From Pocillopora damicornis (lineage: Eukaryota): a DNA stretch of 64,000 nt. Under the pieces are notes generated by a model. It was not told the DNA's origin and searched no databases. It worked only from the letters and a program-made list of their open reading frames with translations. The DNA lies in NCBI RefSeq assembly GCF_003704095.1, contig NW_020845063.1, positions 1 to 64,000 on the forward strand. The letters run 5' to 3'. Positions 1-49,629 of the stretch are shown piece after piece (the stretch's first letter is position 1; every line of letters starts with the position of its first letter). Made by a program: the position numbers and the translations under genes.

Positions 1-979
1 GAGCCATTATCGAGATTCCTAAGCAGCTGTTTTATGATAACGAGCTGAATGAATGCGCTGGAGATTTCAGGTAAAAAAAAATCATTCGCAATTTTTTTTT
101 TCAAAAAGACCAGATATTAAAAAGTCATAGCAAATGAGAAAACAGCTACACTTTTAAGACACTAGCTACATCAAAATGTATTGTAGGAAACACCTCATTA
201 GCAAGCTGCCCGTAACACAGGCGGTGATACCTATTGGAGAGTTGTCTTGAGGCCCAAAAGCATGCTAATCTACGCATGACTCGCGCTTTATTTGACNNNN
301 NNNNNNNNNNNNNNNNNNNNNNNNNNNNNNNNNNNNNNNNNNNNNNNNNNNNNNNNNNNNNNNNNNNNNNNNNNNNNNNNNNNNNNNNNNNNNNNNNNNN
401 NNNNNNNNNNNNNNNNNNNNNNNNNNNNNNNNNNNNNNNNNNNNNNNNNNNNNNNNNNNNNNNNNNNNNNNNNNNNNNNNNNNNNNNNNNNNNNNNNNNN
501 NNNNNNNNNNNNNNNNNNNNNNNNNNNNNNNNNNNNNNNNNNNNNNNNNNNNNNNNNNNNNNNNNNNNNNNNNNNNNNNNNNNNNNNNNNNNNNNNNNNN
601 NNNNNNNNNNNNNNNNNNNNNNNNNNNNNNNNNNNNNNNNNNNNNNNNNNNNNNNNNNNNNNNNNNNNNNNNNNNNNNNNNNNNNNNNNNNNNNNNNNNN
701 NNNNNNNNNNNNNNNNNNNNNNNNNNNNNNNNNNNNNTCATTAACTGTTTATCTTTCAGTCGTTATCGCTAATTGGAATTCTCTTTTCATGCCAAGGTGC
801 AAAAGATCCAGAAAATGATTGAAAAAAAACGCTTTGGTGACGAAATCAAAGTTGGCAGCGTGGAAGAGTTTCAGGGGCAAGAAAGAAGAGTAATCATCTT
901 GTCAACAGTCAGGAGCACCAAGAAAGAATATCTGGAGATGGACAAGGACTTCCGCCTCGGATTCCTCAACAATCCCAAG
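1..979 (+). CDS. MOV10: MOV10-like helicase 3' exons of a second copy on the plus strand (1-70 and 797-979)
   Basis: [22 protein letters not shown]|GT. The 183-nt exon VQKIQ...GFLNNPK differs at 2 of 61 aa from the minus-strand exon 1920-2102. Confidence 0.85.
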
Positions 980-1403
980 GTATGGTCTCCAGTTAACTTT
1001 TGCGTTTGACTAAACCCGTCATAAGCAGAGGCAGGTTTTTCTGTGTGTTTATTTTTTATTGTAATTCCTACCATTGTTATTTTTTTATTATTATTATCGG
1101 TTACTTCAAGGAATAAAGATTCAATTGTGGTTGGGGGAAAGTTGGTAAATTGAAAATAGTAGAAATAATGACTGGCTACATTTTTAAAAAGGTTCAAAAC
1201 GCCTTCGAAGGGTAAGAAATGGCTGGTTTAATCACATTTACGTTTATCATACCTCTACTTCAGCCATTGAATCTCAAGGTTTGTAATTTTGGTATTTTCC
1301 CTANNNNNNNNNNNNNNNNNNNNNNNNNNNNNNNNNNNNNNNNNNNNNNNNNNNNNNNNNNNNNNNNNNNNNNNNNNNNNNNNNNNNNNNNNNNNNNNNN
1401 NNN

Positions 1404-3797
1404 TGAGAATCAAGAGAGCCTGGGCACGAGTTATGGCCACGTTGAATCTCTGGGGGATAAGAGTAAGAATGTTACTCGATAAAAGTGCGTTAGATAATCT
1501 AAAGGGATGTGCGATACCGGAGTCTACCTGTATATCCATGTACTTCTTTTCCATCCATACCCGATCTCCTTTGGGCATGACATAAATGTTTTGCCCTCAG
1601 TTAGGGAAAATACCAAAATTATAAAACCTTGGGATTCATGGCTAAAGGAGAAGTATGATAAACGTAAATGTGATTAAACCGGCCATTTCTTACCCTTCAA
1701 AGGAGTTTTGAACCTTTTTAAACATTTAGCTAGTCATAATTTCTACCATTTTCAATTTACTAACTTTCCCCCAACCACAACTGAATCTTTATTCATTAAT
1801 GTACCAATAATGTTAACAAAAATAATAATGGTCGGAATTGCAATAAAAAAAAAGCACCAACAAACCTGCCCCTGCATATGGCGGTTTAGTCAAACACAAA
1901 GATTAACTGGAGACCATACCTTGGGATTGTTGAGGAATCCGAGGCGGAAGTCCTTGTCCATCTCCAGATATTCTTTCTTGGTGCTCCTAACTGTTGACAA
2001 GATGATTACTCTTCTTTCTTGCCCCTGGAACTCTTCCACGCTGCCAACTTTGATTTCGCCACCAAAGCGTCTTTTTTCAATCATTTTCTGGATCTTTTGC
2101 ACCTTGCCATGAAAAGAGAATTCCAATTAGCAATAACGACTGAAAGATAAACAGTTAATGATGAGATCTGCTGGGATGTTGGACGCCCAGGGTGGGGAAC
2201 TGTCAATTTAAGAGATGAGCTCGGATCACTAAAATGTTGAGCGTGATGTGATGCATGCCAAGTTCTTTACCTTATAGTTGGAGGAATGAGCCCGGGCCAC
2301 GAGGCCTGGTGACAACAACTGGATAATTGGTAACGCAAACGAGTAGACAATTCTTTTGGGGAAATAATGAATTGGAATGCCGTTTGAAAAGATTTTATCA
2401 TGTAAAAAAAATATCACAGATTGTACGTATCGAATCGTCTAACGCCAGGAACAATGGAAGATAAGTTCCACACTTGTACTTACTTGTCTTTTGTAAGGAG
2501 ATATCACCCCAATCATCTCAGGTTTTAAGTGCTTTAGTCCTCTGCTCCTCACATTATCGTCTAACAGTTTCCTCAGGTATCGCTCAATAGTTTCCACCTC
2601 AGCCACATTAAAGAAGGAAGGGCTGCTACCTTCTCTCTCGTCCTTACCAAACACCGGATGGAAAATGATCGGGAAGTTCTTATTCGGAAGCTCTTCCCAG
2701 CCTATCATCACATTTCTTGGACAAAACAGGTGAATATTAGCAGTGCAATGTTTTACATTCCGGTTCGGTTGACGTAGGAAAGTAGNNNNNNNNNNNNNNN
2801 NNNNNNNNNNNNNNNNNNNNNNNNNNNNNNNNNNNNNNNNNNNNNNNNNNNNNNNNNNNNNNNNNNNNNNNNNNNNNNNNNNNNNNNNNNNNNNNNNNNN
2901 NNNNNNNNNNNNNNNNNNNNNNNNNNNNNNNNNNNNNNNNNNNNNNNNNNNNNNNNNNNNNNNNNNNNNNNNNNNNNNNNNNNNNNNNNNNNNNNNNNNN
3001 NNNNNNNNNNNNNNNNNNNNNNNNNNNNNNNNNNNNNNNNNNNNNNNNNNNNNNNNNNNNNNNNNNNNNNNNNNNNNNNNNNNNNNNNNNNNNNNNNNNN
3101 NNNNNNNNNNNNNNNNNNNNNNNNNNNNNNNNNNNNNNNNNNNNNNNNNNNNNNNNNNNNNNNNNNNNNNNNNNNNNNNNNNNNNNNNNNTCGTAGGCAG
3201 GACATGACGTCATTAGCCGTTCCAAAAGAGAAGTTTCTGTGAATGTGAGACAAAGGCGACTCATTTAAAAGGAAGTTTTCCCTCCTTTTAGGCGGGTAAG
3301 TAGCAAAACTCTTTGATTATCNNNNNNNNNNNNNNNNNNNNNNNNNNNNNNNNNNNNNNNNNNNNNNNNNNNNNNNNNNNNNNNNNNNNNNNNNNNNNNN
3401 NNNNNNNNNNNNNNNNNNNNNNNNNNNNNNNNNNNNNNNNNNNNNNNNNNNNNNNNNNNNNNNNNNNNNNNNNNNNNNNNNNNNNNNNNNNNNNNNNNNN
3501 NNNNNNNNNNNNNNNNNNNNNNNNNNNNNNNNNNNNNNNNNNNNNNNNNNNNNNNNNNNNNNNNNNNNNNNNNNNNNNNNNNNNNNNNNNNNNNNNNNNN
3601 NNNNNNNNNNNNNNNNNNNNNNNNNNNNNNNNNNNNNNNNNNNNNNNNNNNNNNNNNNNNNNNNNNNNNNNTTGGGGATCTGAGGATCGGGCCTAACTGC
3701 TTAGGGTCTCCCGCAAGCACCAGCTGACCGCCACTGGGATTATTGGGGTCCAGGAGGTCCGCCACAGGGATGATACACTCAGGTTCTGTTGCATGAC
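1404..3797 (-). CDS. MOV10: MOV10-like helicase 3' exons, minus strand, gap-interrupted: 3672-3797, 3191-3236, 2484-2715, 1920-2102, 1404-1449
   Basis: SF1 helicase motifs: GHATEPE...[34 protein letters not shown]...[45 protein letters not shown]. Canonical splice sites where not cut by gaps. Confidence 0.88.
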
Positions 3798-3899
3798 CNN
3801 NNNNNNNNNNNNNNNNNNNNNNNNNNNNNNNNNNNNNNNNNNNNNNNNNNNNNNNNNNNNNNNNNNNNNNNNNNNNNNNNNNNNNNNNNNNNNNNNNNA

Positions 3900-3919
3900 T
3901 TCTCGGAAATCTGACGTCA
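3900..3919 (+). promoter_or_regulatory. GAS (TTCTCGGAA) + CRE (TGACGTCA) composite of MOV10 copy B
   Basis: Exact reverse complement of 13476-13495, 110 nt upstream of the donor at 4029. Confidence 0.6.
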
Positions 3920-5224
3920 TGGTCCTGTGATACTGAGAAATCGAACAAATCAGCAGGAAAACTGTATAAACTTGTATTTGCTTCTCGTAATATTCAAAGG
4001 AAGAAACCGAAGGCATTTATTGCTCAAAGGTGAGTTCTAAAAGCAAGGAATTTAGTAATTTTGCAATTATGTTTCTTAATTTGTTTGAATAATAAGTGCG
4101 ATCCCGGCCTGTGTTGCTGGCTTGATGCTCAATAAGAATTTCAAATTTTCAACTAGTACTTATTTCAGTCTGTAACGTGTAATAATAATAAAGTTTTTTG
4201 TGGGCTCACGTAGAACCTTCGGTCGTGAGAAATCCTACTCTAAATTTTCAGCTCCATAGGTGCATTGGCCGATCGATTGTTCGATGAACATATTTTGCTC
4301 GTTACTTAGAAATTACATCATCGGTGTAGTTTTCCGAGAATTCTTTCTCGGAGAGATACAAGCTAATGCAATGTTTCACCTAGTTACTGAAATTTGTGAG
4401 CGGTACATAGATTTGACTCGGGGTGCAGTAAGCTTATAGTGAAATCCTAAGGAGTTTCAGGGTTTGCTAATGCTATCGATGTCAAAGTATAGAAATTGAA
4501 AGTGCTACAGCTCAGATGCGAAGGTTCTTCACTTCCGTTTAACTGGGTCGTAGATAATATTTTTCCAACACAGGAGAATGTAGTCGACTATCTTATATTG
4601 TGTCCACTAAAGATTGCAGGCCTCAAGAGGTTCTGAAATTTCTCACGGTATTTAATAAACCATACACACACTGGTTATGCAAAGCCGCATAATTATTCTT
4701 GGTGAGCAGTTTGATTTAGGTTTGTTGATCGCTGCTTTCATTTTGGGATCCAAATAACAACATCCAGAATTACAAACATTCTGCGTTCAACAATTGGTGC
4801 TTCTTCAGATGGCAGTTTCTAATATTGTCTTGAAAGCACGGTGAGAAACGAAAATAAGATGAATATTAAGGATTTTGAGAACCCTCATTTCTAGCCTGAT
4901 TTCGCTGAGGTATCGATCCATTTTGGCCAACGAATTAGAGGAAAACAACGGACCATTTGGGGGTTAATAGCGGATCGTAATACTGAATTTGCTTCTCTCT
5001 TCTTTTTCTGTAATTCCTTTTGCAAATCACGAACCATGCATGCCTATGCGGAGTCGTGGTTATTTTCATTTAGCCTTCTTAGTTTCCTTGCACCTTGTTG
5101 CGCAGATCATGTTTCTCTCTTCACTTTAATTTGGATAAAGACCATTAAATATAAGTGTAAATCGCAACTGTAAAGCTTTTTCATTTCAAAAGATTTGATC
5201 ATTTCTATTGTAGACCTGTCCAAT

Positions 5225-14684: not shown

Positions 14685-15923
14685 ACAAAACGGCTAAAGA
14701 TTATAGCAATGGATGCTGTCGATATACACAAGAGTAAGCCGAGCGTAGAATTTATAAAACCCATAATTTAAATTCATATGTTATGTCTTATAAATTGAAG
14801 TTAGAGAATTTCAACAATACATAGTTGAAGAAAATTCCTTAGAATTTGTTGTCTACACGAACAGCTTGTAAATCATGTTGGCAAAGTGATTTGAAGCAGT
14901 TTTCAGTTCTTCACTCAAATAGTTGGGATGCAAATTGTTTTCAGTTGACTGCTTCTGTCAGACCTGTAATTTTTGAGATATTTTTAGACACTTAAAGTTC
15001 TTAGAGGCTCGCCTGGCCTGAAAACTGAGCCTATTCGGCAAAACTTGACATTAAATAAATATGAGAGATGAGTTAAAGAAATGTTTCGCTGTTTTTTTTT
15101 TTTGAAAATGAATTATATTGAAGCTGTCCACAGTTCAATAAAATACCTTTCATCGGCTTTAAACAAGTCAAGCAGCTACAGGGATGATGACCTTAAATTT
15201 GAAGGGTTTCCTTGCTCAGTTGCTGCTAAGATGACGAGAGTTTGAGCAATCTTAAAACCCAAATTCGTCCTTAAAAGGCGCCTGGCAGGCTAGCTGCGAA
15301 GCTATCTGGGATTTCGTTCGATTTTTTTTGTTGTCAAACTATTGGATATGTCGGTAACTCGAGGAGTAAATAGGGAGTCAATTACTTCCAAAACAATACT
15401 TTATTTCTAAGTAAAAACGTTGACATAATTTGGTACGTTTAACGGTAGTCAGGGTAGAGTTGACTGGTCAGGAAAGCTAGCATAAAGCAAAGATTCGAAC
15501 AGGTGAAAACGGTGTTACCGTTTACGTTGGGATTTCTCTGACCGTGCCCTATCTACTGCTCTGCTTTTGATTTTACACTTTGATACTGAAGATAGTTGAT
15601 GAGAAGTTTCTATCGATCAGTCAGCTCAAAATAATTGGAATGCCAAACCCAAAAGGCCTAAAAAAAAAAATTTACCTAAGAAATCTGCCGGATTTCTGAC
15701 CAATCTCTTCTACGGTAGCTCATAACTACTGTATTTCAGCCTTGTAGTCACAGAATCTTAGCCAAAGCCTCACTGGAGCTCGAATGAAAAATTGCTAACG
15801 TCCCATTTACTGTTTGGTTATTTTTAATTCAGAAAGTTACTTACATTTATTTAAGTCATATTTGGGGTTCTTGCAATTGCTTGACGCCTTGATCGCGTTG
15901 GGCTCATCGTTCGTGAGAGAATT

Positions 15924-16799: not shown

Positions 16800-19700
16800 C
16801 TACGGACCCATTCTCTGCCCAAAGTTTCCTACACCAAACGTCTCATACCACATAGGTGGCCGTGTAAATCTCAAAGTTCTTAGATAATTAAAGGCTTCAG
16901 TCGGGTGTCCGGATGCCAGCTTGAGAACAAGTTTAAGTGACTCTTCTGAATGTTGCAGGATAGCATTTTCCATTCTTTTCGAAAGAAAACCCGATACGCT
17001 TGGCACTGTAGACGTTTTGTGGGCAGCCTGAATCCAATAGTTCAAATTGCGCACCTGGAAACTAAGCTGCACATACTTGATTGCAATTGCTTGCCAGTCA
17101 CAATTTAAGGAAGTATCGTAATCAGCTAATGCAAAATTCATCTTTGATAAAAATCGTGGCAGTTTACCATTTAAAGGCATGTGAGATCTCACTTCATCCG
17201 ACTTTTCTAGGACTAAATCGAGGTTCCGTTTGTAATTGCGATAGAATTTGTGAAGTAGAGTTTCGAGATCCTGTTTACCACGAAACTGGTAACACATATC
17301 AATGGTTTCTTCCTTTGGTTTGTAATCTTTTGGAGCTTTTGTACAACGCATTTCTGCATGAGGTCTCGAGGCAACAAACAAAAGGTTCTTCAGTCGCTCG
17401 ATTTCATCGTCGAGGAAAGTAACAAGAGAATTTCGAGTATCTAGAAAGTTAAGTTTTAGGGCCTGTTGGCGGTCAAGGAAAATCACCACAATTGTAAAAT
17501 GGGGTAAACCTCTTTTTATGTCAGCTGGACAATCTGCTATGAATGAAGAACATTTGTCCACCTTCTTCTGGTAATCGACGCGAATTCTATCTACTTCGTC
17601 AGATGTTTTGAAAAGGTTGACGTTTGCAGCCTTATATTTTCGGCATTCATCGCGCCCACAGCCCTCCTGAAGAGTTAGTATCTCATCTTCCGTAAGCTCT
17701 AGAAACAACCTGCTAGGATTCATTCCAAAGAACATATTGTAGATGAGGAAGTACTCTGCTTCTAGCGAGGGATATCGAAGAGTACCACCGTAGTTCTTTA
17801 TTACGTCGACAACTTTGCACCATGGACTGTGCCACTCACACGAGTCGCCGCCAATGAATAATGCTAAGTACATTGGAGTAATTCCATCTTTATTGGGGCA
17901 GTCCACATCAACACCAATAATTTCACTGCTAGAGAGCAAATGTGCAATAAATTGCCACATCCCTCGGGTAGCTGCAACGTGGTAAAGGGTCAGATCAGAA
18001 CGCTTTTCACTACAGCCAATATCCAAGGTCCCATCTTTAAGGAAATGATTTAAAATAGCTGAAGCCGAAAGTGAGGCGAATTCAACCTCCAAAGCTGTGA
18101 GTGCACTGGGTACTTCGAGGTTTAGAAAAGGCCTGTATTTCACAGCATATAATACTGAAAGCCATAAAGGGGAGGACCCGTCATGAGTTTCTATACTTAG
18201 GTTAGCACCTAAAGAAAGAAATTTTTCAATTGCCACCAGGTTTGCACCCTGAGCCGCTCTATGTAGAGCGTTATAGCCCTCTGCATCAAAACATTCATCT
18301 AAAACGTTACTGCCGTCAAAATAAGACAGAATGGCCAAAGTCAATGGTCCATCGCCGGTCTTGATTGTTTTCAGGTTTCCCTCGTCGATGTGCTCGTCGT
18401 ATTTATCCAGAAAGTAGTCGAAAAACGCATTTTCTGTTTGCAAATATTTTTGCCAGTTATCACTTCCCTTTAAATATTCGTAAAGGTAATGAAGGTAATG
18501 CAGTTTGTGATATGACGCTAAGTGAAAGACTGAATCCTCGAAGGGATCTCCACACGTGATGTCCACTTTCACGTTATGTTTTACAAGAACTTTTGACATA
18601 TGACGGCCACCGATGCGCAAATAAGCAAGCAGAGGAGTTAGCCCCGAGGCACCTCGACAGTTAACGTCCACACCTGCTTGTAATAAGGTGTTGGCGGCAT
18701 AAACGAAATGGAGTCTAACATAATCAAGCAGATGTGAGCAGTTGAACTTTGTAAATGTTGTTGTATACGCTCGCGATATGACCCTCGTAAAAGACGTTGC
18801 AACCAAGGCTTGTTCATATGGCTTATTTAACGCAACGACACGGTCCTTCAGCCTCTCAGAGACTGCAATATCGTAAGAAATAATGAAAGGTGTCAAGGAT
18901 AACACAAGAGAACTTTCGCTGAAACGACTGCTTCCTGTTAGGTTGTTGAAAGTACTGGTTTTCTCTTCTAATATATGGAAGAACGTTCGATTTCTATGGT
19001 CTCGCATAGCTAGAGTATTAGCTTTTCCTCTCTTGGAATCCAGCTTAACAAGCTTGATCAAGGTATTTAACCAAGGATATTGAATATCCAATTCGCTCAT
19101 GATCGTCTGAAAAGCTCCAGAATGTTTCTCTATCCAACCCTTAGGATTGGTGACATATAAGTCTGCAAAATACTCAGAACCCACGTGTGTTATGTCTTTT
19201 ACCACATAGTGTAAAGCCGTCATTCCCTCGCCATCAGTAGCTTGGTGATCGCATCTCAGGTCAAACAGAGGCCCAAAAACGTCCTTTGAAAAACATGACG
19301 CGGCACTATGTAGGGGTGTTGATCCATTTAGGCTTCGTGCATCGATATCTGCTCCACTGCTGACCAGAAGTGTTACAAGGGATGGCATATTGTGGCAGGA
19401 GGCGATGTGGAGTGGCGTGGAGCCATTACAATCAAACGTGTCAGGATCTACTTCGTACTTGATAAGCAACTCGGCAATACTATGATAGCCATGCTTAGCA
19501 GCGATATGCATAGCAGTAAATCCACACGGACAACGAGTTGGAAACATCGTACCTTCTGTAAAGGAGCCAGTACTCGATGATAACATTCTATCATTACAAT
19601 GAACATTGGCATCAACTCCAGACTTCAACAGTGTTTCTAAGATGTTATAATTATTTGCGTACACAGCCTCGTGTAAGGGGAGTCTTGTCGCAGAATTTGG

Positions 19701-22700
19701 ACAATTAATAGTATTTTGGTCTTGGCTCAACAAAGTTTTAATCACGTCCACATGTCCTCGAGCAACTGCCGCATGAAGGGCTGTTTCACGCAGGTGAAGA
19801 TGATGGTTATCATACAAACGTAATTTTTTAGACTCCAATTCGCTCCCATCTTCATCAGGAAAAGCAGAAAACGGGATGTTCTGGACACAGTCATCTGCAA
19901 CTCCTTCTCCCAGTAGGTATTGTACGACCTCATTATGACCCCCAGCTGCTGCGTGATGTAATGATATGTCATCCAGTTCTCCCCCAGCGCTCTGAAGTAT
20001 CTGGACAATGTCAAGATGACCGTTAGCCGCCGCCAATTGCAGAGCAGTATTGTTAGCTCCAGTTGTGCTGAAAATATTCACTTTGTGCTGAATAAGAAAG
20101 GCTACAACATCGTTGTTACCTTTTTGAGCGGCTGTATGCAATAATGAATATCCGCATAGCTTTCTTCTACACTCTTTAATGGGATTTTTGGAGTGTGAGA
20201 CACTTTCAAAATCCAAGTATGCTGCTCTACGGTTGAGGTTAGCTCCTCTACCAAACAGAATCTTCAAGTTTTTCAAGTAGCCAGAAGTTGCCGCTATAAA
20301 CGCTGGTGTACGTTGGTTGTAGTCTACATTGTCAACATCGCTGAAGTGGCCCACGAGAAGTTTAGTTACATCTGCATTAAACCAGCTGGAACTGTGGTGA
20401 AGTGCTGTCATTTGAGTCAAAGGGTCGCTTGAATTAATATGACTTGATGGCAGGGACAGAAATTGCTCCACCAAAGGATCATCCAGACCCCCTTCAACAA
20501 TATGACTCGCCAGGTAAAAGGCACTATCCGGCTTGAGGGGGAAATTGCTTTCTTCAGCCTTTTTCAGATAGTACTTTGCAAGACGGTTATGACCATTTTG
20601 CTTCTTGATATAATAGAATTTCCCTTTGTTTTTATCACTCGTGAGCCACTCAGACAAAGATGCATGATGAATCCGAATGAGATCCTCTCCTGATCCATGC
20701 CACAAGAACAAAGATACAAGGTCAAGTTTTGGCATGAGGTCGTACTCAAGGTCAAGAGCTGGGTGTCCAAGCTTGAGTGCTAAGTGCATTTCATGGATAG
20801 TAAGGGGGGTGTATGCTGCAACAAGCACTTCAAAAATTGCTCGCAAGGGTTGAAAAGATTCGGATGTGGCATACTTTCTCTCGAAGTATAGCTGATATGT
20901 GGTGTCAAGAGTTTGAGGAAACGTATCCAAACTGACACTTTGGGTTGTTTCCATCCACAAGTCCAACAAAACTTTAACAAACTGAAAGTTTCCCTGACCT
21001 TTCTGGGTCAAAATTGAAACAATTTTCTGAGCTGGCGCCTCGTTATTTGTGATTGCAAGGTTCGTTTTAATTTTATGCACGAGGGAATCTTTCCAAGAAA
21101 ACACCTTGAAGGATAAATATGTATCAATGTCATCTAGGTTTTTTGTGTCGTCCGACCGTAACTCTACTATTTTCAGCCCTTTGAAACTTGCAGTGATGGT
21201 GCTTACATTCCTTGAGCTCAAAATCAGCTTCAGCCACTTTGGAAGGCGTCGAATTTTGGATTTAAGAATGTTTAGAATCTCTGCCTTGTCGTTCGCACAT
21301 TCATCTAAGGCGTCAACGACAATATACCAAGGCTTCTCAGGTTCTAGTCCAAGGTTTTTCAAGGGGGTAAGTATTCCTTGTTCGAAACACCATTCTGAGT
21401 CTTGAGGACAATCCTTGTGTAATACTCTTCGAACAAACGGATCAGTCTCAAGGATTTTGCCGTACTTCTCCAGTTTTGAAGCGATCATGTTGGCAAGATT
21501 TCGAACGAACTTGGCTCCAGTCTGCGTTCCTTTGTCGACGTGCATGCAAAAATGATACCCAAGGATTCTGCTGTGAATAACTGGACTTGATGTTCTGGAA
21601 CAAAGCAAATAACTAAGGAAAGCAGACTTACCAGAGCCTGGATTTCCAGTTATTAAAACACCACGCTTTTGAGTGTGCTCTAAAACAGTTTCCATTTCCT
21701 GGTACAGCCATTGCCGGCCGATGAATTCTGCTTTCGATGAATTGATGAAATCACTGAAGTCGAAATTCTTCAACTCCCAATGATCATTATAATCTTGGAG
21801 CGTACATCCTGCAGGAACAAGAATCACACATTTTTGCCAATTTGAATACGGTATGTGTATAAAAATTGGCATTTTTGATCACCACTTCAGGTTCGGAGCT
21901 GGTAAGTCATAAAATTCCCAGCTGTGGATCATGATAATGTAACTGTCAAGCAGCCTCACGTGTCTCCTTTTATATATCATTTACTCAATGATCCTGATCC
22001 CGAGGCAGCGTTCGGTACGGCTCTAAATATTTTTTTTAACCTGAAGAATGGTTTTGAAAAATATATCGGAAAAACATAGCTCCGAGCGTTGATATAACAT
22101 GAGGTTCACCCTCATGTCTGCTGCGGCCTACAGACCTCCTTCATGCCAAATTGATTTTTTATTTTGCTATTTAAAGTTTTATTTACTCACCATCTCCGTC
22201 GTAAGAATCCTCTAAAACGATACAGAGGTTACATAGGAGCATAAACATGAACCACGATATGAGGTGGATTTTTCTCACGGGCTTGATATTTCTTATCAGG
22301 TTTCCTACAAGGATTCCTAACAGGTTTCCAAATGTTTGACTTTCTTTAGGCAATCTTGTCCAATTTAAATCATCAAGTTGGTTTTTAAGAATCTCATGTT
22401 GTTCTTGGAGCTGGTTTTGCTGCTCTTTGTTCCTGGCGGACTCCTCCATCAATGTTGTCAAATTGTTATTAATGCTAGAAATCTCTTTTGCCAAAATTTC
22501 TTTTAGGTCGGCCAACACTTGTGCCTCCATACTCTGCAGGTCTGAAACATGCCTAAGGTTGTTTACTTCTCTCAGGGCTTGCTGAGCGTCTGGATCGTGA
22601 ACTATGCTAGGATCCTGAAGCAGATTTTCAATCGTATCAAAGGCGTCTCTCTTATCGGCATCACTTAACTCTAGCTGTGGCACATGCACCCACTTGTCAT

Positions 22701-23187
22701 TTCGAGTGTCACGGACGGCTTTGATCAAGGGCAGTGAAACAGTGAAGTGGCTGCACCAGGACATCAGATTTAGAAAACCAGCGATGTCCATGTCATCTGC
22801 GCTCTTGATATCTGCATGGCCTCCCTGATCAGGGAGGAAGAGCTTGGCTATTTCCCAAGGACCCAGGATTGGATCCATCCACTTACTGCCATCACTTTGT
22901 TTCCAATTTGGCCTGTTTTTGTCATGATGTGCCTGAAGGATATGAGCCCACTGACAGGTCCTCATGTCGTGGTATTCATTTGGTTTTCTTCTCGGGATAT
23001 GGACACATGTGCAGGGTCCAGCAACTCTTGCAGACACATTTCTATAAAATGACTCCATCTCACGGGTAACGAAAGGGCGAAGACCGTGACGCAGCTCCGT
23101 TGTTAACGCATGACCGAGAGCAAGCCAGTTTCTGTACTCCGGCTTTGTTAGTTGTCCGATCGTCCCAGGAGCACTTGGGGAGGGCAT
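16800..23187 (-). CDS. ~2001-aa HEPN-like/coiled-coil/TM - NACHT(STAND) NTPase - ankyrin repeat protein; coding exons 22191-23187 and 16800-21808
   Basis: Donor G|GTGAGT at 22191 and acceptor CAG|GA at 21808 join in frame (6006 nt). FIGRQWL, Walker A GNPGSGKS, YHFC, Walker B IVVDALDE. Many ankyrin repeats (TALHxAA, TPLHxA). The N-terminus EYRNWLALGHAL...GLRPFV...WEIAKLFL...RNDKWVH resembles CXorf38/DUF4559-type HEPN domains. Confidence 0.85.
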
Positions 23188-23519
23188 TACTTCAATGAAA
23201 GAAGAGAAATAATTGATACGAAGCGAATTAGAAAACTGTGGTGTCTTGTCGTCTTGATTCAATACAAACAAATGCTTGCGAATGGACGATAATTGATTTG
23301 CATATTAAGTAATGTTTGTTATTCAATACGCCGGACTACATGGGAGTAGCAGATAAAAGGTTCATCCTTTATTTTATGTTATCGTTACAGTTTTATCTTC
23401 GACCTCTGAACAAAGTAATCAGTGTTAATCCAATGCGGTTAAGAAAGTTGTGGCTGGAGCAATTAAAGTTAGAAGCTCTATGAAGGAAATTATTTTGCAT
23501 CATCTTCTGTTTTGAATTC

Positions 23520-23530
23520 GGGGAATCCCC
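23520..23530. promoter_or_regulatory. NF-kappaB site GGGGAATCCCC in the putative first intron of the STAND gene
   Basis: The reverse complement GGGGATTCCCC is the classical MHC class I kappaB sequence. Confidence 0.5.
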
Positions 23531-24476
23531 GCACTTAACCTACCACTGAGTTGCCAATTGTGTGACGATGATACAAAGCTGTCTTTGTTGAGTTTAAAAC
23601 TTGAAGATAATTTTAGATGACAAAATACACGCAATGAGCTTTAGCTAATTGTTTCTACGAAAATTTTTAATGCCTTTATTAAAAACCATCAAAACCTCGA
23701 GGACTGCAGCAAAGACAAAACAAAACATTATTGAGACGTCGTAATTGCGAATCGTAAGGTCGGTTACTCTGGGGCTCTCCAGAAGTTTCCATCAGCCTAC
23801 TACGGTACAACTTAAAAGCATGGTGGTCGGCGAATTCAAAGCTTTTACTGATATCAACTTGTTCTTAACCTTAACAAAAACTAAAGTGGCGGCTAAGCTC
23901 TGAATTATTTGAAAAGGTTTGGCCTTGGACATAAATAGTTTTTGTCTGAGCGTAGCCAATTGTTTTTTCAACTTCTGGTTTCGATTTTGCTTCAAATGTG
24001 TCCTTGGCAGTGCTTCCTTCAAACATCTAGCAATAGGTAAAAAGTAATGGAAAAAAAGACGTAACAACGGGTAGAGGTACGCTACAAAGCGACGGTTAGC
24101 TGGTTCATGCATCAAGTTCGATAATCAAGTAAGTTTTCACGGCTAACTCGTAAATATTACCGGCTGAGAAAAATTGACAATGTCGGCATCAACAGTCGCT
24201 CGGTCGATTTCACCGCAGAATGTGAAGTCACTAAAAAGTTAAAATCATTGTTTGTCCTAACAACCGTGTTCATGGTTATTAATCTGTCTTCCTTTTTTAA
24301 CGCAACCTGATAGAATGTTCATCTAGGAATTTGTTTGTACATCAGGTTCCAAATGAACGAACAGTTAATTAGTTTGATGTTTACGCATTGAAGTAGACAA
24401 AATTCCGTATCCAGTCAGTCGTTCCTTTATTCATACGATGAAATAAAATGATTTCTAAGTTCCAATTTGATGTTAG

Positions 24477-24586
24477 ATACAGTGAGCGTTGAGATCGCTG
24501 AATTACAGCTCTTAGTAACTATTCCAAGTATATACAGTGAGCGTTGAGATCACTAAAGAACAGCTCTAATTAACTATTCTAAGCAT
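24477..24586. repeat. Two diverged tandem copies of a 55-bp unit
   Basis: ATACAGTGAGCGTTGAGATC...ACAGCTCT...TAACTATTC repeated at 24477 and 24532. Confidence 0.85.
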
Positions 24587-24789
24587 AATATTCAACGTTA
24601 AGTATGTTTTGAGATATTCGAGCTGATTTACCGCAAAAGGCGCCAAAGGAAAAGCCTTAACTTGACTCAGTTCCTCTTTAAGTGTTCCATAATGACGCTA
24701 TATTACATCTTCGGATCAAACTCACCTTAAATGTCGATTTAAGAACGTAGTTAGTTAGTAGAGTAACTTTCTTGGTATCATTCATATAA

Positions 24790-24809
24790 TTACGTCACCT
24801 TTCTGGGAA
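24790..24809 (-). promoter_or_regulatory. CRE-like (TTACGTCA) + GAS (TTCTGGGAA) composite upstream of a putative non-coding first exon (donor AG|GTGAGT at 24726) of the STAND gene
   Basis: Same order, 3-bp spacing and orientation relative to the gene as in the MOV10 promoters. Confidence 0.55.
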
Positions 24810-26262
24810 ACCACAGGATTTTTCTTTGTTTTTTTTTTTCGGATACGTTCCCATAGTTCACTGCGGGCTTCATTAAAATTCAATTAGGAGAGGTAGACTG
24901 AGTGCGAGGAACATCAAATGACTTCCAACTTTTAAACCTCTCGTGACAGAATCTGTTTGCTGCATTTATTTACAGATGATTCGAATCTTCGATGAAAATC
25001 GGAAAGTGTTAACGTGCCAGTAGAATTGAAGGGAGTTGAGGAGAAAAAACCAGAAACAAGAGAAGCACTTTTTCTCTGTGTTTATTCGGTGAATATTTCT
25101 GTAAAATTGTTGTGCAATACGAGAAGAAGAGAGTACGAATTGCAAATCATGCTGACGAATTCCTCAATGATTTACTGTTATCATTTTAAATATGGATGCA
25201 AATATGTCTCAGTTCATTGCTCCTGGCTAAGATCGTGTTTGAAATAGCGTTGAAACGATAAAGTTATTTTAGTGTGTACTAAGTTTATCACTGAATTGTT
25301 CTCAACGGCTAACTTCCAATACTTTTCGTGATTTATGTGGTAAAGCAAATCATTTCTTCTATCCACGAAATAACTGTAGATAAAAGAAGAGCCAGAAAAG
25401 ATCATCAATTCTTGGAATTGCGCCTGGCCTGAAAACTAAATGTGGTCATTCAAGCTTTCGATTAGATTGGTATGTGCAAGTTAAACCAGTGTTTCTCTGC
25501 TTTGAAAATTCTATTAAAGCTGTCCTTTTTGCACCTAAAGGGAATTTAACCTTTGATTTATTCAAGCCAGATTTCTCTTCTTCTACTACGGGAATGAGAG
25601 TCCGAAATATCTTTTAGCATCTCATTTTCTTTACATTAGAAATCAGAAAACAGACAATTTGAAAATAAATTTGTATCAAGGGAAACAAAGTCCTTTCACC
25701 AACTTGTTTTGCAGTGATCTGATATTGATCTCCAATCCGGTCGAGTTCTTCATGGGGCGCGGGGAAAACTATATGGCTTGTCAGAGCTAATCACAAAGCA
25801 CTTATTTATGTGTGCCCATATTAAGGACTTAACCTAAAAGACATAAATATTATAGGGGAAATTTTATAATGCTCAAGTCAATAATTTAAAATGAGCATTA
25901 TTAACAGCGCTAACTGAAGTGCGTCAAGGTGAACCAGGGTTTTCAAGAAAGCGTTCCTTTAAAAAGGAGTCGGTGATTCAGAATAATTTAAAATTCATTG
26001 ATCCTCTACCAAAGAGGCTGATTCCCAATCAGGTTTCAGCCGGGCGAATACGAGGAAACAAAAATAACAATCACTTGTCCTTTGTTAAAGTAGGCAGGTG
26101 TACTATGGTAATAGCAACTTAATGATTATCATTTGAACGAACGAAACGGCTCGTGAAAACCACAAGCACTTAGTATACATTGAATTTCCGCATTTAACGC
26201 CAGTTGTCGCTTGTCGCTAAACAGAAAGGTCCCCAATCTTTTCTTCTGCTACTTTGGTAAAG

Positions 26263-27228
26263 ATGACCGCCAGCCTTAATCAAGGCAATGAAGACTTCAA
26301 ATCTCATGTCTTCATTATCAACGGAGGCGTACTGCTCTTTTTCGCGTTGTTGATATCGATCTCCAATGGCATCCTCCTGTTCATGATCTATAAAGATCCG
26401 CTAAAGAAATTTCGCAACGCCACCGCAGTTCTTGTGGTCTCTCTGAGCATAGCAGACTTTCTAACGGGATGTGTAACCGCCGTAGACGTTGGAATAGCAC
26501 ATATTCTGGAAGGAATGGCAATGCAAGATGTCATGCTTCAGGCCAAGATCGTTTCGCAGATAACCGTGCGCGCGAGTGTTTGTATCATGATCATTTTTGC
26601 GGTTGAACGGTTCATAGCTGTTGCCTTCCCGTACGTTTATCGTAGCTCCGTGACCATCCCAAAAACCATCCTCTGTTGTGTGCTGTGTTGGTTGTTAGCC
26701 ATTGTTACAAGCTGTCTGGAGCTGGTAGTGGAGCGAGATTTGTACGATGTTGTGTTTCTTTACCTCATTTTTGTCCTACCACTTGTCACGATTATTTTCA
26801 CATACTCGGCAGCTTATTATATGGTGCTACATCGACATGGAAGACTCTACCAAAAAGAGAAAATATCCAGGCGATCGGCTGAGATGCAGAAACAACTGAT
26901 GACGACTGCCTGTCTGATAATTCTTGTCTTCTTCGTTTCTCTCGTTCCGTTTTGGGTATTCACCACCATCCGGCGTTACTGCAAAGAGTGTATTCATCAA
27001 AAATGGTGCATCGCAGGTTATCGATTGTCCATCCCGATTCTGTACAGTAACTCTGCCCTAAACCCGTTGTTGTACGCTTGGAGAATGCAGCCATACCGTC
27101 AAAGCTTTCAAGCCTTGTTCTCCAGAAAACAAAATCGTGTGGGAGGAACAAGTCATAACGAATTCCCTCCAAACAAAGGCAATGAAACTATACTGGTCAA
27201 TGAATTTTGCGAAGAGACTAAAGTATAA
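26263..27228 (+). CDS. Intronless class A (rhodopsin-like) GPCR, 321 aa
   Basis: Seven hydrophobic segments; SN in TM1, LSIADFL, AVERFIAV (DRY-like), NSALNPLLY (NPxxY). Confidence 0.93.
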   Translation: MTASLNQGNEDFKSHVFIINGGVLLFFALLISISNGILLFMIYKDPLKKFRNATAVLVVSLSIADFLTGCVTAVDVGIAHILEGMAMQDVMLQAKIVSQITVRASVCIMIIFAVERFIAVAFPYVYRSSVTIPKTILCCVLCWLLAIVTSCLELVVERDLYDVVFLYLIFVLPLVTIIFTYSAAYYMVLHRHGRLYQKEKISRRSAEMQKQLMTTACLIILVFFVSLVPFWVFTTIRRYCKECIHQKWCIAGYRLSIPILYSNSALNPLLYAWRMQPYRQSFQALFSRKQNRVGGTSHNEFPPNKGNETILVNEFCEETKV

Positions 27229-47174: not shown

Positions 47175-49629
47175 ATGCCTCGAGCTTTTCTTGTGAGGAG
47201 TAATCAGATCAAAGAGGAGACTGGCGTTGCAGCGGAAAACAGCCGCAGTAAGTTTTTTTTATTGAATGTATAGTTGTGAATTGAATGGAGAAGTGGTCTA
47301 GGATTTTTTGGTCTCTTAATGCGATTGCTTTTGTACCCATCCCATATGGCTGTCTCTAATTAACTGGAAATTTTGCATGGTATGATATTACATTCTTTTT
47401 ACTATTTTATTTCAGTTTAACTGAATAATTGTATGTTCTGGACAACGTTTGCGCAACAGCGGGTAAATTTTAAGACAGGCTCGAAATAGCTGGAACCGCT
47501 TTAAAAACCCAAATGGTGTCAAGAAACATATACATAGCTTTTAGTCTTTTTATACACTGATTTGGACGTAAAGTCAAATATGATTGATAAAATTTAGCCG
47601 GTTTTTTTGTGCCGATGTACCGCCTAAAAACTTAGTATTTGCTAATTTTCAAACAAAAACGAAATTCATCAAAAATTCGATAGAATTTCATCCGAGTTAT
47701 TTTATTTTCTCTATGCTTGTTATCGATACTGCTTCCTTTTAAAATCTAAACTAATTGAGCACGTCTCCTTTTTTCGACCTCGTAACGAACAATCTGATTT
47801 TGCAATCTCTTGAATTAAGTACTTATTACACTAATTACTTAACCAATGTGGGGTTTTATTTTAATTCCGCTGCGTTCTGATCTGCCGCAACTAATTAATG
47901 CAGAGAAGGGGCTAAAAATTCCACGCTTCTTTCATTTTAAGTGTTATTGCGAAATTCCTTAAACGTGTAAAGCTTTTTTGCTACCACAATGTTGTAATAA
48001 TATTCTCCTACGAAATGTTTTTTTTTTCCCATTTCCTCTCATTTTTCCAACCCCTCATCATTTCTATTTGTATCAGCAGACAATTCGAACCCTGATGAAT
48101 CAATGGCGGCAAAGAAAATGCAACCGGTTATTCACAGATCAGCATTTTCTATTGTTCAGCGAGGCTCTATGTACCATCGTGAACCAGCCGCGTCAAGTTA
48201 CTTCTACCCGTCATTACATCTACCATATCACAGCCATATGACAGAGTTCCAAAGTCTACCAGGGAGGTCAATCAATTCACTTGCCTTGCCGCAGCCAAAA
48301 GCACCACGCTTTGCTTGTCACCACCCCCGTGCGTCCGTCATTTGTCACACTGTTGACCCTGTTTTCAAACCGATGTTCCCTAGAAGAGATGCCATTCAAC
48401 CATCCTTGTTTGACCACAGTACCATTTTCCTCCGTGAAAAGTTTGAACGTGAGAGAGCTTCAATAGTGAAACAAGAAAACAACGAGACACTTCAACAATG
48501 GTTCCAAGATACGCCAAACGCAAATGAGGATAGCCAATCGGCGGCTGCCTTCAACCAGGCCCTGCTTTTTTCATACGGTAAAGAGTCGGAGACTGAGCTC
48601 AACATCTCGGCCATGTACTGGAATACCAGGCCTCCACTGTGCGACTCATTTACAGAAAGTATGGCGAAGGAGCCAAGAGATGTCCAAAAGAGTGAAGAGA
48701 GAGTTCAAGATACAGGAAATTGGTCTTTTCCCCGTAATGTTACGGAGGCGGAGGATTCAAACGAGATTCCGCTTGAAGGAGAGCGGACTAATGGACTGGA
48801 TGCCAAAAAAGTTAACACTTGTGATGAAAGAGCTGTGGATTCAACAGACATCGCTAATTCCCCCGATACTGCAGCTGTTAGCGAACAGCAACGCATGATG
48901 GCGTATGAAAACAGCCATGCTAAAAAGCCCAGGTCCAAGCATAGATGTGATGAGTGTGGCAGAACATTCACTCGCTCCAGTACTCTCGTAACGCACAAAC
49001 GAATTCACACTGGAGACAAGCCTTACGTCTGCAAACAGTGCGACCGCGCCTTTAGACAGCTTGGTAACCTGACTCGTCACCAGCTTACTCACACAACGTC
49101 TAAGCCATACATCTGTCAACAGTGCAACAAAGCATTCAACCGCGCTTCTAACCTTCACACCCACATGCGCACACATTCCGACTACAAGCCATTTAGCTGC
49201 GAATTTTGCGGCAAGCGGTTCCACCAGAAAGTCGACATGAAGATCCACCGCTACACGCACACGGGAGAAAAGCCCCACAAGTGCCAGAAATGTGGGCGAG
49301 GATTCAAGCAGCTGACCCATTTAACCTACCACATGAGAACACATTCTGACGTGCGCATGTACAAGTGTGAGTTTTGTGGCAAGGGCTTTAATCAGAAGGG
49401 AAACCTGAAGGCGCACGTGTACCGTCACACGGGAGAGAGACCATTCACGTGTGATATCTGCGGCAAGGGTTTTACACTGGCTTCAACTTTGAACACACAC
49501 AAGAGAACACATGCGCCACACAAGCCATTTCAGTGTCAGTACTGTGAGAAGGCTTTTTATCAGAAGAATGCCCTTAAATCTCATTACATCGCCTCTCATC
49601 CTTTCACAGGAGGCGTATCTCTGTTGTGA
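47175..49629 (+). CDS. SNAG-domain, 8x C2H2 zinc-finger transcriptional repressor (Gfi/Senseless-like); exons 47175-47247 and 48080-49629 (~540 aa)
   Basis: Exon 1 encodes MPRAFLVR (SNAG) and joins the long ORF in frame. Finger 4 CGKRFHQKVDMKIH...HTGEKPHKC closely resembles GFI1. Confidence 0.85.

Follow-up and report, generated by a model that had tools for sequence, protein, structure and literature searches.

An expressed stony coral gene predicted to join a CXorf38-type HEPN domain to a TANC/NPHP3-type STAND NTPase and ankyrin repeats

The window analysed here is a 64,000-nucleotide stretch of the Pocillopora damicornis genome (assembly GCF_003704095.1, contig NW_020845063.1, positions 1 to 64,000), and all coordinates are positions within it. 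On its minus strand lies an expressed three-exon gene of this pocilloporid stony coral, whose product is 2001 aa long. The gene is built as follows:

24726..24811, minus strand: 5'UTR exon (exon 0), with its 5' end at least at 24811
23544..23600, minus strand: alternative 57-nt 5' mini-exon
22191..23189, minus strand: exon 1, encoding aa 1-332 and the first base of Gly333
21809..22190, minus strand: intron of 382 nt, GT..AG, phase 1
16800..21808, minus strand: coding part of exon 2, encoding aa 333-2001 and ending in the stop codon (16800-16802)

The initial annotation had proposed that two open reading frames, of 362 aa (22183-23271, minus strand) and 1690 aa (16800-21872, minus strand), are joined in frame into one protein of about 2001 aa. 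Both frames are present, and splice sites, RNA contigs and protein models from four coral genera all agree with their union. The donor (G followed by gtgagt, 22191/22190) and the acceptor (ending in cag, 21809/21808) keep the frame, g and ga together encoding Gly, so that 332+1+1668 residues make up the 2001-aa product between the start codon at 23187-23185 and the stop. Our RNA evidence consisted of assembled contigs, which carry neither expression level nor strand. In runs X9 and X10 (contigs of 7.0-7.1 kb) and X1 (a short contig), which represent three studies, the assembled RNA skips the segment 21808-22189/22190, whose ends read CT..AC on the plus strand and hence GT..AG on the gene strand. 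The proposed 22191/21808 junction is thus bridged exactly by spliced contigs from three studies. Moreover, the junction, ...DDSxxxD-G-C(T/S)xQ..., falls at the identical residue in the full-length NCBI models from Oculina, Desmophyllum, Acropora and Montipora.

Exon 0 was recognized from loose RNA contig ends at 23197 that match window positions 24734-24763; its donor (...TTTAAG followed by gtgagt, 24726/24725) joins exon 1 at 23189, and it contains a 20-codon upstream open reading frame starting at 24785. When the spliced 5' end was read by hand, an in-frame TAA was found two codons 5' of the ATG. The mini-exon comes from a single low-depth contig of one run (X10), with a joint from 23189 to 23544 (CT..AC). 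At the other end, the lengths of the RNA contigs imply a 3'UTR of about 1 kb past the stop, with the transcript ending near 15808.

Searches, folds and alignments were run separately on the exon 1 and exon 2 pieces of the protein. Together they yield the following order of parts:

22543..23187, minus strand: predicted CXorf38/DUF4559-type HEPN domain, aa 1-215 (Pfam PF15112, HEPN_Swt1, AF2, hhalign)
22924..23013, minus strand: Cys/His-rich insert (C59, C61, C78, H88), a putative Zn ribbon within the HEPN domain (alignment of 74 relatives)
22684..22704, minus strand: R162-N-D-K-W-V-H168, the Rx5H HEPN motif (conservation over 74 sequences)
22339..22542, minus strand: coiled-coil-like helical linker, aa 216-283, differing in length among orthologs
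22213..22338, minus strand: a pair of short helices, both hydrophobic, at about aa 284-300 and 307-325, with a basic loop (KPVRK) between them and an acidic stretch after
21156..21713, minus strand: predicted STAND P-loop NTPase of the TANC/NPHP3/ANKRD50 type (Pfam PF24883, NPHP3_N)
21624-21647, minus strand: Walker A, GNPGSGKS, intact
21297-21320, minus strand: Walker B, VVDALDEC, intact
20493..21137, minus strand: TANC1-like AAA lid and winged-helix domains (PF25521, PF25520)
19158..20432, minus strand: ankyrin block 1 (Pfam Ank families; 56-67% identity to orthologs)
18732..19157, minus strand: insert of 142 aa that is poorly conserved and matches neither ankyrin nor any other Pfam family
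17778..18731, minus strand: ankyrin block 2, residues 1026-1343 of the exon 2 part, partly non-canonical (Pfam and per-domain identities)
16803..17777, minus strand: C-terminal family-specific domain, a predicted bundle of long helices (AF2 pLDDT 81.4)

The N-terminal part had been assigned, from recognition, to a CXorf38/DUF4559/DZIP3-like HEPN group. Its CXorf38/DUF4559 half holds: PF15112 matches aa 13-274 with 104.7 bits against a cut-off of 27 (E 8.8e-30) and also matches all 48 aligned relatives. HEPN_Swt1 reaches 27.5 bits, exactly its cut-off, in the window protein and matches 29 of the 48 relatives. The DZIP3-type assignment was ruled out because PF18738 fails to match the window protein. 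Profile comparison with a DZIP3-type HEPN domain of the same genome (hhalign, E 2.6e-5, probability 75%) aligned RNxxxxH and a conserved Asp in register. The AF2 model of the domain is all-alpha (pLDDT 93.8), with the Cys/His insert forming a non-helical stretch at aa 55-78. Foldseek against the PDB returned no match for this model. VIA placed a Swt1 HEPN, an archaeal HEPN and Csm6 within the top 50 of 48,161 chains (4pqz_A, Swt1 HEPN, Z 5.5 over 119 aligned residues; 2hsb_A, Z 5.1; 4rgp_B, Csm6, Z 5.1), and these values of 5.1-5.5 lie inside helical-bundle noise, as generic bundles reach Z 7.5.

The RNDKWVH motif, at aa 162-168, is where the initial annotation saw it but does not end the N-terminal 210 residues or so, as had been thought; the domain ends near aa 212 and the motif is internal. 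Its arginine and histidine, whose conservation in homologs had been singled out for scrutiny, proved to be 92-99% conserved. In 74 relatives drawn from 389 clusters, conservation was 0.92 for R162, 0.96 for N163 and 0.99 for H168, with D134 falling within 0.92-0.99 and the insert residues C59, C61, C78 and H88 at 0.88-0.96. The Rx5H motif is nearly invariant in alignment A1, and none of the genome's five TANC-type paralogs has lost R162, N163, H168 or D134. The motif is gone from some relatives, such as Oculina P0167, which carries K..D where others have R..H. Exon 1 is predicted from these alignments to encode a CXorf38/DUF4559-type HEPN head with an intact R-N-x4-H/Asp centre. In 38 long relatives the same HEPN type stands ahead of NACHT, NB-ARC, NPHP3_N or nSTAND3 NTPases, or of dsRBDs, and its partner modules include the conflict-system domains GT4-conflict and TRADD-N as well as Bcl-2.

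Downstream of the head, the linker is 41-63% identical to that of coral orthologs. Pfam gave weak coiled-coil-type matches only, and when the sequences of the PDB were searched with profile A1, this region drew nothing beyond coiled-coil noise; what had been called a coiled coil is here described as a coiled-coil-like linker. The hydrophobic segment that follows had been taken for a membrane anchor. It is real, with a Kyte-Doolittle mean of 2.44 over the 17 residues of aa 309-325, and the helix pair occurs in every TANC-type paralog and coral ortholog examined and in the Nematostella protein; it is missing from HEPN-NACHT-TPR paralogs. The two helices are short, and their insertion into a membrane is only marginally predicted: on an approximate scale without position terms, a 19-mer of the window protein comes to an apparent free energy of -0.7 kcal/mol and the orthologs mostly to +1 to +5. 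The KPVRK loop between the helices also poorly fits the positive-inside rule if the two form a hairpin whose ends are both cytosolic.

The Walker motifs of the NTPase, which had been described as intact and of NACHT type, are indeed intact, but by Pfam threshold the domain is predicted to be a TANC/NPHP3/ANKRD50-type STAND NTPase and not a NACHT. NPHP3_N (PF24883) matches with 68.8 bits against a cut-off of 24.8; NACHT reaches 24.7 bits, under its cut-off of 26.7. The winged helix (HTH_TANC1, PF25521) scores 53.7 bits against 27 and the lid (PF25520) 22.2 bits, under its cut-off of 29.1. NCBI names for the relatives are 'TANC2-like' or 'ANKRD50'. The long ankyrin arrays that had been noted are borne out by matches to Pfam Ank families, and the window protein contains no LRR, its repeats being ankyrin by Pfam. 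The protein can therefore be called NLR-like in the broad STAND sense only; a canonical NLR it is not, with NACHT under cut-off and LRRs lacking. No kinase family was found by Pfam in either exon.

The C-terminal bundle gave little to go by. Foldseek against the PDB found no match for the model, and ESM Atlas showed low recognition of the C-terminal 325 aa, with weak, generic helical and dynein-N-like matches. VIA listed a chemoreceptor four-helix-bundle sensor, HR1/HR2 mimics, talin rod and soluble alpha-pore-forming toxins, the best at Z 12. We assigned no fold family to the bundle because this value is within the tool's range for unrelated helical bundles.

The gene is a member of a hexacorallian orthogroup that is old and evolves slowly. 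In the tree, the window gene and its Stylophora counterpart lie within a clade of robust and complex corals, and the in-genome paralogs, about five in number and 36-41% identical, form a separate deep clade. The nearest named protein is from Stylophora pistillata (88%), identity between coral clades is 63-79%, and Nematostella XP_032218245.2 has the identical architecture; the locus of the Nematostella ortholog is LOC116601501. Duplications specific to a lineage occurred in Acropora and Desmophyllum. The same genome holds 9 CXorf38-type matches against at least 90 DZIP3-type HEPN matches. For an arms-race immune receptor, conservation this high and a copy number this low would be atypical, and a rapidly expanding receptor of that kind was rejected for the window gene because of the tree and the identities. 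The part most conserved with Nematostella is ankyrin block 2 (48% identity), unusually high conservation that points to a conserved ligand or partner rather than a fast-evolving pathogen epitope.

The design itself has been described before. In 2013, Anantharaman et al. (PMC3710099) reported, from computation, fusions of CXorf38-HEPN with NACHT and ankyrin from cnidarians and cephalochordates; they class the CXorf38 family as active, with a Zn ribbon inserted in the HEPN domain, note bacterial HEPN-STAND proteins, and already propose the analogy with RNase L. The window gene is a well-conserved further example, sharing with the class as presented there the PF15112 HEPN, the Cys-rich insert, the R-N-x-H centre and the position N-terminal of STAND and ankyrin. 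Where those passages call the NTPase NACHT, that of the window protein is TANC/NPHP3-type by current Pfam, and the passages on the class in PMC3710099 mention neither the hydrophobic pair nor the C-terminal bundle nor coral-wide conservation of the orthogroup. In anthozoans, HEPN-NLRs of the DZIP3/hRUL138 type have undergone great expansion (Emery et al. 2021, PMC8260672; Noel et al. 2023, PMC10236652). The window protein resembles these in its N-terminal HEPN head, STAND NTPase, C-terminal repeats, and RNxxxxH with the upstream Asp in register, but its HEPN is of another family and its gene is slowly evolving and low-copy. A literature search on the HEPN-STAND-ankyrin design yielded computational statements only, with no enzymatic, binding or localisation report for any member.

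The order of domains (HEPN with its Cys/His insert, linker, hydrophobic pair, NTPase, lid and winged helix, two ankyrin blocks, C-terminal bundle) is best explained, in our view, by a 2001-aa STAND-type switch, a reading to which we give an even chance. The ankyrin or C-terminal region would bind a ligand or partner, and binding would permit nucleotide-dependent oligomerisation of the NTPase; the oligomer would in turn unite N-terminal HEPN domains into composite dimeric active sites that may cut RNA. As a hairpin, the hydrophobic pair would probably hold the protein on a membrane, at its cytosolic face. RNase L, Ire1 and the bacterial STAND-nuclease (Avs-like) systems follow the same logic. 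A ligand-gated RNase activity of the window protein is plausible, and it may serve in antiviral defence or cell death.

RNase L combines an ankyrin sensor, a pseudokinase and a KEN/HEPN RNase; both it and Ire1 are activated by dimerisation or oligomerisation, and Ire1 is anchored in a membrane. Their likeness to the window protein is by analogy only and lies in the coupling of an ankyrin (or other) sensor to an RNase of the HEPN superfamily. The window protein, in contrast, has neither kinase nor pseudokinase, its HEPN is N-terminal and of another family, and its assembly would be driven by the STAND module. With bacterial Avs-type STAND-nuclease proteins it shares the plan of a nuclease effector (predicted here) at the N terminus, a repeat sensor at the C terminus and a STAND NTPase between them, with activation by oligomerisation (likewise predicted here), yet the gene is eukaryotic with introns and the sensor is ankyrin, not TPR-like; we claim a likeness of design and no sequence relation. 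Taken further, the protein might be a membrane-tethered ligand-gated RNase, the cnidarian counterpart of RNase L/Ire1 built on a STAND NTPase, with the conserved hairpin on the cytosolic face of an organelle and a conserved small molecule or host protein at ankyrin block 2 as trigger; intron-retaining transcripts might add a 334-aa tail-anchored HEPN-only form. This extended version we consider speculative and unlikely.

Among the non-canonical NLR-like proteins of corals, molluscs and lancelets, STAND receptors with a HEPN head are some of the commonest. Because it is expressed, single-copy-like and conserved to the tractable model Nematostella, and has an intact catalytic-type centre and a conserved, putative hydrophobic tether that predicts localisation, the window gene is a good candidate for a first biochemical test. 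If the protein cuts RNA upon activation, early-branching animals would be seen to use the effector logic known from RNase L, Ire1 and bacterial Avs, with a bearing on antiviral and stress or bleaching responses of corals.

Vertebrate ANKRD50 and TANC relatives are trafficking or scaffold proteins, and the window protein might likewise be a housekeeping factor of the TANC/ANKRD50 kind, its HEPN domain binding or processing a specific cellular RNA or merely dimerising and its ankyrins holding conserved cellular partners at a membrane, with no part in immunity or cell death. The NTPase, lid and winged helix of vertebrate TANC1/2, ANKRD50 and NPHP3 match the same Pfam models and are likewise followed by repeats (ankyrin), and the names given to relatives, the strong purifying selection (as seen between coral clades and, for ankyrin block 2, with Nematostella), the small stable copy number and the largely orthologous relationships all suit such a role. 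Those vertebrate proteins, however, lack an N-terminal HEPN domain and a hydrophobic pair to our knowledge. The HEPN head, moreover, swaps among NACHT, NB-ARC and nSTAND3 and joins GT4-conflict, TRADD-N and Bcl-2, company typical of immunity and cell death; its catalytic-type residues are nearly invariant, and Acropora and Desmophyllum have duplicated the gene. On balance we regard a scaffold or trafficking role as somewhat unlikely.

The HEPN domain might also be a pseudo-nuclease, serving only for dimerisation or as an adaptor, as proposed for the yeast Swt1 HEPN, with the signal passing through other partners or the C-terminal bundle. Its closest Pfam HEPN model is indeed Swt1-like, a group that PMC3710099 lists as partly inactive, the motif is lost in relatives such as Oculina P0167, and the four-helix-type C-terminal bundle weakly and non-specifically resembles sensor bundles and soluble alpha-pore-forming toxins. 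The near-invariance of R162, N163, H168 and D134 in the 74 relatives and their integrity in the five paralogs, together with the scoring of the CXorf38 family as active in the same source, make this quite improbable. Were the domain inactive after all, HEPN heads of animal STAND proteins could be non-catalytic modules.

A true single-pass transmembrane receptor, which would put effector and NTPase on opposite sides of the membrane (HEPN cytosolic and NTPase-ankyrin luminal or extracellular, or the reverse), draws on the strong hydrophobic core and on its basic N-terminal and acidic C-terminal flanks, which by the positive-inside rule favour N-in, C-out, but is very improbable given a segment of only 15-17 apolar residues that is marginal in most orthologs, a second conserved hydrophobic helix directly upstream, the lack of a signal peptide, and an arrangement for which we know of no precedent, the P-loop STAND NTPase and the ankyrin repeats facing away from the cytosol.

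One paralog, C4335, is a candidate for a tail-anchored protein that stands alone; the same junction motif, ...S-F-E-Y-G, closes its exon, and a contig end lies 4.8 kb away.

The initial annotation had joined two minus-strand open reading frames, 22183-23271 (362 aa) and 16800-21872 (1690 aa), into one protein by an in-frame splice. Read on the minus strand, the donor ...GGAGATG/gtgagt lies at 22191/22190 and the acceptor ...cctgcag/GA at 21809/21808. They delimit a phase 1 intron of 382 nt whose split codon (g+ga) encodes Gly, and translation, which starts at ATG 23187 and stops at 16800-16802, yields 332+1+1668 = 2001 aa. Of the 21 runs listed, 14 are recorded as RNA; roughly half of the sequence words in window 20500-24500 occur in them, as would be expected of runs containing exons only. 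We checked the junction in contigs from four RNA runs, each from a different study. In three runs (X1, X9 and X10) a contig skips 21808-22189/22190, and the ends of the skipped segment read CT..AC on the plus strand, that is, GT..AG on the gene strand. The bridging contigs of X9 and X10 measure 7.0-7.1 kb, with more than 1 kb on each side of the junction, and extend about 4.7 kb below 20500; their lengths thus place the 3' end of the transcript at an estimated position near 15808. Full-length NCBI models from Oculina, Desmophyllum, Acropora and Montipora (1950-2002 aa) align across the exon junction without a gap, reading ...DDSxxxD-G-C(T/S)xQ... versus ...EDSYDGD-G-CTLQ... in the window. Splice sites, RNA contigs and coral models thus bear out the predicted junction, and the gene is real and expressed. 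The intron region 21780-22219 is also covered by RNA contigs of lower depth, which unspliced RNA (pre-mRNA) or DNA carry-over may explain; a genuine read-through transcript would stop at 22183-22185 (...DGDGE) and encode a 334-aa protein of HEPN domain, coiled coil and hydrophobic tail.

Loose ends of RNA contigs at 23197 matched window 24734-24763. An upstream exon ends there with ...TTTAAG/gtgagt at 24726, and its acceptor, ...ttgaag/TA-ATG, lies at 23190/23189; the apparent break at 23197 is an 8-nt aligner slide from this true acceptor, made possible by the likeness of exon end and intron end. The spliced 5' end carries an in-frame TAA two codons upstream of ATG 23187, which is therefore the start codon, in agreement with the start of the NCBI orthologs. 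One low-depth X10 contig includes a 57-nt mini-exon (23600-23544). Read by hand, the 5'UTR exon also contains a 20-codon upstream ORF (ATG 24785), spliced on the minus strand from window 24785-24726 to 23189-23187. Its TAA stop and the main ATG share bases (TAATG), an arrangement able to couple termination to re-initiation. At 22333/22334, just before the first hydrophobic helix, three of the four RNA runs bear an in-frame insertion of 12 nt (4 aa), being otherwise about 98% identical to the window. A 338-aa variant of the exon 1 ORF is likewise common in public data (proteins P0271 and P0407); the window therefore carries the shorter allele or lineage.

In all searches, folds and alignments, exon 1 (window:22192-23187:-) was treated apart from exon 2 (window:16803-21806:-). 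The N-terminal assignment to the CXorf38 group, previously made by recognition, was upheld by Pfam, where aa 13-274 matched DUF4559/PF15112 at 104.7 bits (E 8.8e-30). HEPN_Swt1 fell slightly below its cut-off with the whole of exon 1 and exactly on it (27.5 bits) with aa 1-215 alone. HMMER, run over all 1.84 billion representatives, returned 389 clusters at E<=1e-3. Across 74 relatives spanning the whole domain, the RNDKWVH (Rx5H) motif is conserved at R162 (0.92), N163 (0.96) and H168 (0.99), as are D134 (0.95) and C59, C61, C78 and H88 (0.88-0.96). These residues agree with the definition of the CXorf38 group by Anantharaman et al. 2013 (PMC3710099) as an active HEPN with an inserted Zn ribbon. 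The centre is probably equivalent to that predicted for human CXorf38, R162..H167 plus D134, in a 2026 preprint. Profile-profile comparison with eleven aligned DZIP3-type HEPN domains of the same genome (hhalign E 2.6e-5, probability 75%, 83 columns) set D-M-D-I...RNDKWVH against F-D-I-T...RNTVYGH with both the Asp and the motif in register.

The AlphaFold 2 model of the domain is of high confidence (pLDDT 93.8) and all-alpha, with a non-helical stretch at the Cys/His insert (aa 55-78). Foldseek found no PDB match to it. In VIA, an exhaustive structure search, the top 50 of 48,161 chains included three HEPN proteins: AF_0298 and Csm6, each at Z 5.1, and the C-terminal domain of yeast Swt1, at Z 5.5 with 119 aligned. 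Generic helical bundles outscored them, reaching Z 7.5. The sequence tests argue for HEPN membership, and the predicted fold is consistent with it. Judged by its sequence, the head of the protein is a CXorf38-type HEPN domain whose catalytic-type centre is both intact and strongly conserved.

Exon 2 encodes an intact STAND NTPase followed by ankyrin repeats. Both Walker motifs, A (GNPGSGKS) and B (VVDALDEC), are intact as first described, but the NACHT type does not hold by Pfam's threshold: NACHT scored 24.7 bits, under its cut-off of 26.7, versus 68.8 bits for NPHP3_N. The TANC1 winged helix matched at 53.7 bits and the TANC1 lid below threshold, which we refer to as a TANC-type (TANC/NPHP3/ANKRD50) NTPase. 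Strong matches to ankyrin families confirmed the long arrays; an insert of 142 aa, itself poorly conserved, splits them into two blocks. No Pfam family matched the C-terminal 325 aa. From 30 aligned relatives, AlphaFold 2 predicts that this region folds into long helices packed as a bundle (pLDDT 81.4), for which Foldseek, VIA and the ESM Atlas offered no assignable relative; the best VIA score was Z 12, a value that, by the tool's own guidance, unrelated helical bundles also reach.

Between head and NTPase, a coiled-coil-like helix whose length differs among orthologs (aa 216-283) leads into two apolar stretches (aa 284-325) with a basic loop, KPVRK, between them and acidic residues after. 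For the second stretch, LISWFMFMLLCNLCIVL, the Kyte-Doolittle scale averages 2.44 across 17 aa. Its hydrophobic character stands; as the membrane anchor proposed earlier, it is predicted only marginally. On approximate Hessa-scale values without position terms, the summed apparent free energy is -0.7 kcal/mol for a 19-mer in the window, but most ortholog values fall between +1 and +5. The two-helix pattern, with the basic loop and an acidic ...S-x-x-D-G exon end, recurs in all coral orthologs, in Nematostella and in the genome's four other TANC-type paralogs, whose NTPases are only 36-41% identical; it is absent from the HEPN-NACHT-TPR paralogs. Such wide recurrence marks an old, selected feature. 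The pair is possibly a cytosol-facing hairpin tether, the sole topology keeping both flanking domains cytosolic, although the basic loop fits a hairpin poorly.

Among named proteins, one from Stylophora pistillata comes closest (88%); an ENA cluster with 572 members reaches 99% identity. In a tree built from the NTPase region by maximum likelihood, the window gene and Stylophora group with support 100/100, nested in a 100/100 clade that contains the robust corals Oculina and Desmophyllum and the complex corals Acropora and Montipora; paralogs from the same genome form a separate deep clade. Identity to coral orthologs is 64-74% in the HEPN domain, 65-79% in the NTPase and 63-77% in ankyrin block 2, but merely 20-40% in the hydrophobic linker. 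The architecture is shared by Nematostella vectensis XP_032218245.2 (1951 aa), where ankyrin block 2 is the region of highest identity (48%). By these comparisons, conservation is deep across Hexacorallia.

The genome holds nine matches to the CXorf38-type domain versus at least 90 to the DZIP3-type (PF18738; for example C3384:16488-16892, C4004:462368-462781, C2883:80949-81350 and C55:306628-307029). Several of the latter share a long open frame with a STAND NTPase distantly matching that of the window. Three other TANC-type genes have the window gene's layout of a HEPN exon and an NTPase-ankyrin exon. The same layout is implied by the junction motif of a HEPN exon on contig C4335, where the NTPase exon was not found; for a fifth TANC-type NTPase-ankyrin exon, on C3883, no HEPN head was found. 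Two further genes are single-ORF HEPN-NACHT-like-DUF7779-TPR genes. Paralogs form close pairs at G000:C824:68259-84000 and G000:C3883:836857-849010. The C824 pair is divergent, each member comprising both exons; the C3883 pair consists of two NTPase-ankyrin exons on opposite strands, with no HEPN ORF of at least 120 aa upstream of the minus-strand copy.

Among 38 long relatives, the CXorf38-type HEPN precedes NTPases (NACHT 17, NB-ARC 7, NPHP3_N 5, nSTAND3 3) or is combined with dsRBDs (9). One relative, P0125 (Montipora foliosa XP_068688784.1, 1065 aa), joins a GT4-conflict glycosyltransferase and a TRADD-like N domain to a CXorf38-HEPN, hydrophobic segment and NPHP3_N NTPase, and so has the window protein's chassis plus extra N-terminal conflict-system modules. 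In the 472-aa ENA protein P0164, a CXorf38-type HEPN with intact RNHWAH is fused with a domain of the Bcl-2 family (E 2.4e-24) and the protein ends in a hydrophobic tail, a direct link of this HEPN type to apoptosis machinery.

We give about an even chance to a mechanism in which a ligand or partner would bind the protein, NTP-dependent oligomerisation would follow, the HEPN domains would then dimerise, and the dimer would cut RNA, possibly at a membrane. The main rival, a non-immune TANC/ANKRD50-like scaffold whose HEPN has a specific RNA-binding or RNA-processing role, is favoured by the gene's slow evolution and low copy number; we regard it as possible but distinctly less probable. A pseudo-nuclease adaptor is unlikely, and a true single-pass receptor very improbable.

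The locus of this candidate RNase belongs to a class already described: the CXorf38 HEPN, NACHT and ankyrin combination in cnidarians, with an RNase L-like hypothesis, appears in the 2013 account (PMC3710099), and cnidarian, coral, mollusc and amphioxus surveys have counted HEPN-headed NLRs since then. In the portions of the literature accessible to our search, no enzymatic test of these proteins was found, nor any mention of the TANC-type NTPase, the hydrophobic pair, the unassigned C-terminal bundle or the unusually strong conservation. Surveys based on NACHT may miss such TANC-type genes.

Other open reading frames in the window
26254-27228, plus strand: single-exon ORF of a rhodopsin-family GPCR (Pfam 7tm_1, E 2.3e-24)
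48103-49629, plus strand: C2H2 zinc-finger protein ORF, 508 aa
53835-54722, plus strand: trypsin-like serine protease ORF, 295 aa (Pfam Trypsin, E 1e-9)

The GPCR ORF is on the opposite strand from the HEPN-headed gene, 1.4 kb upstream of its 5' exon. The zinc-finger and protease ORFs have no apparent link to the gene. The G+C content of positions 1-4000 is 25-28%, markedly low versus 34-44% in the remaining window.
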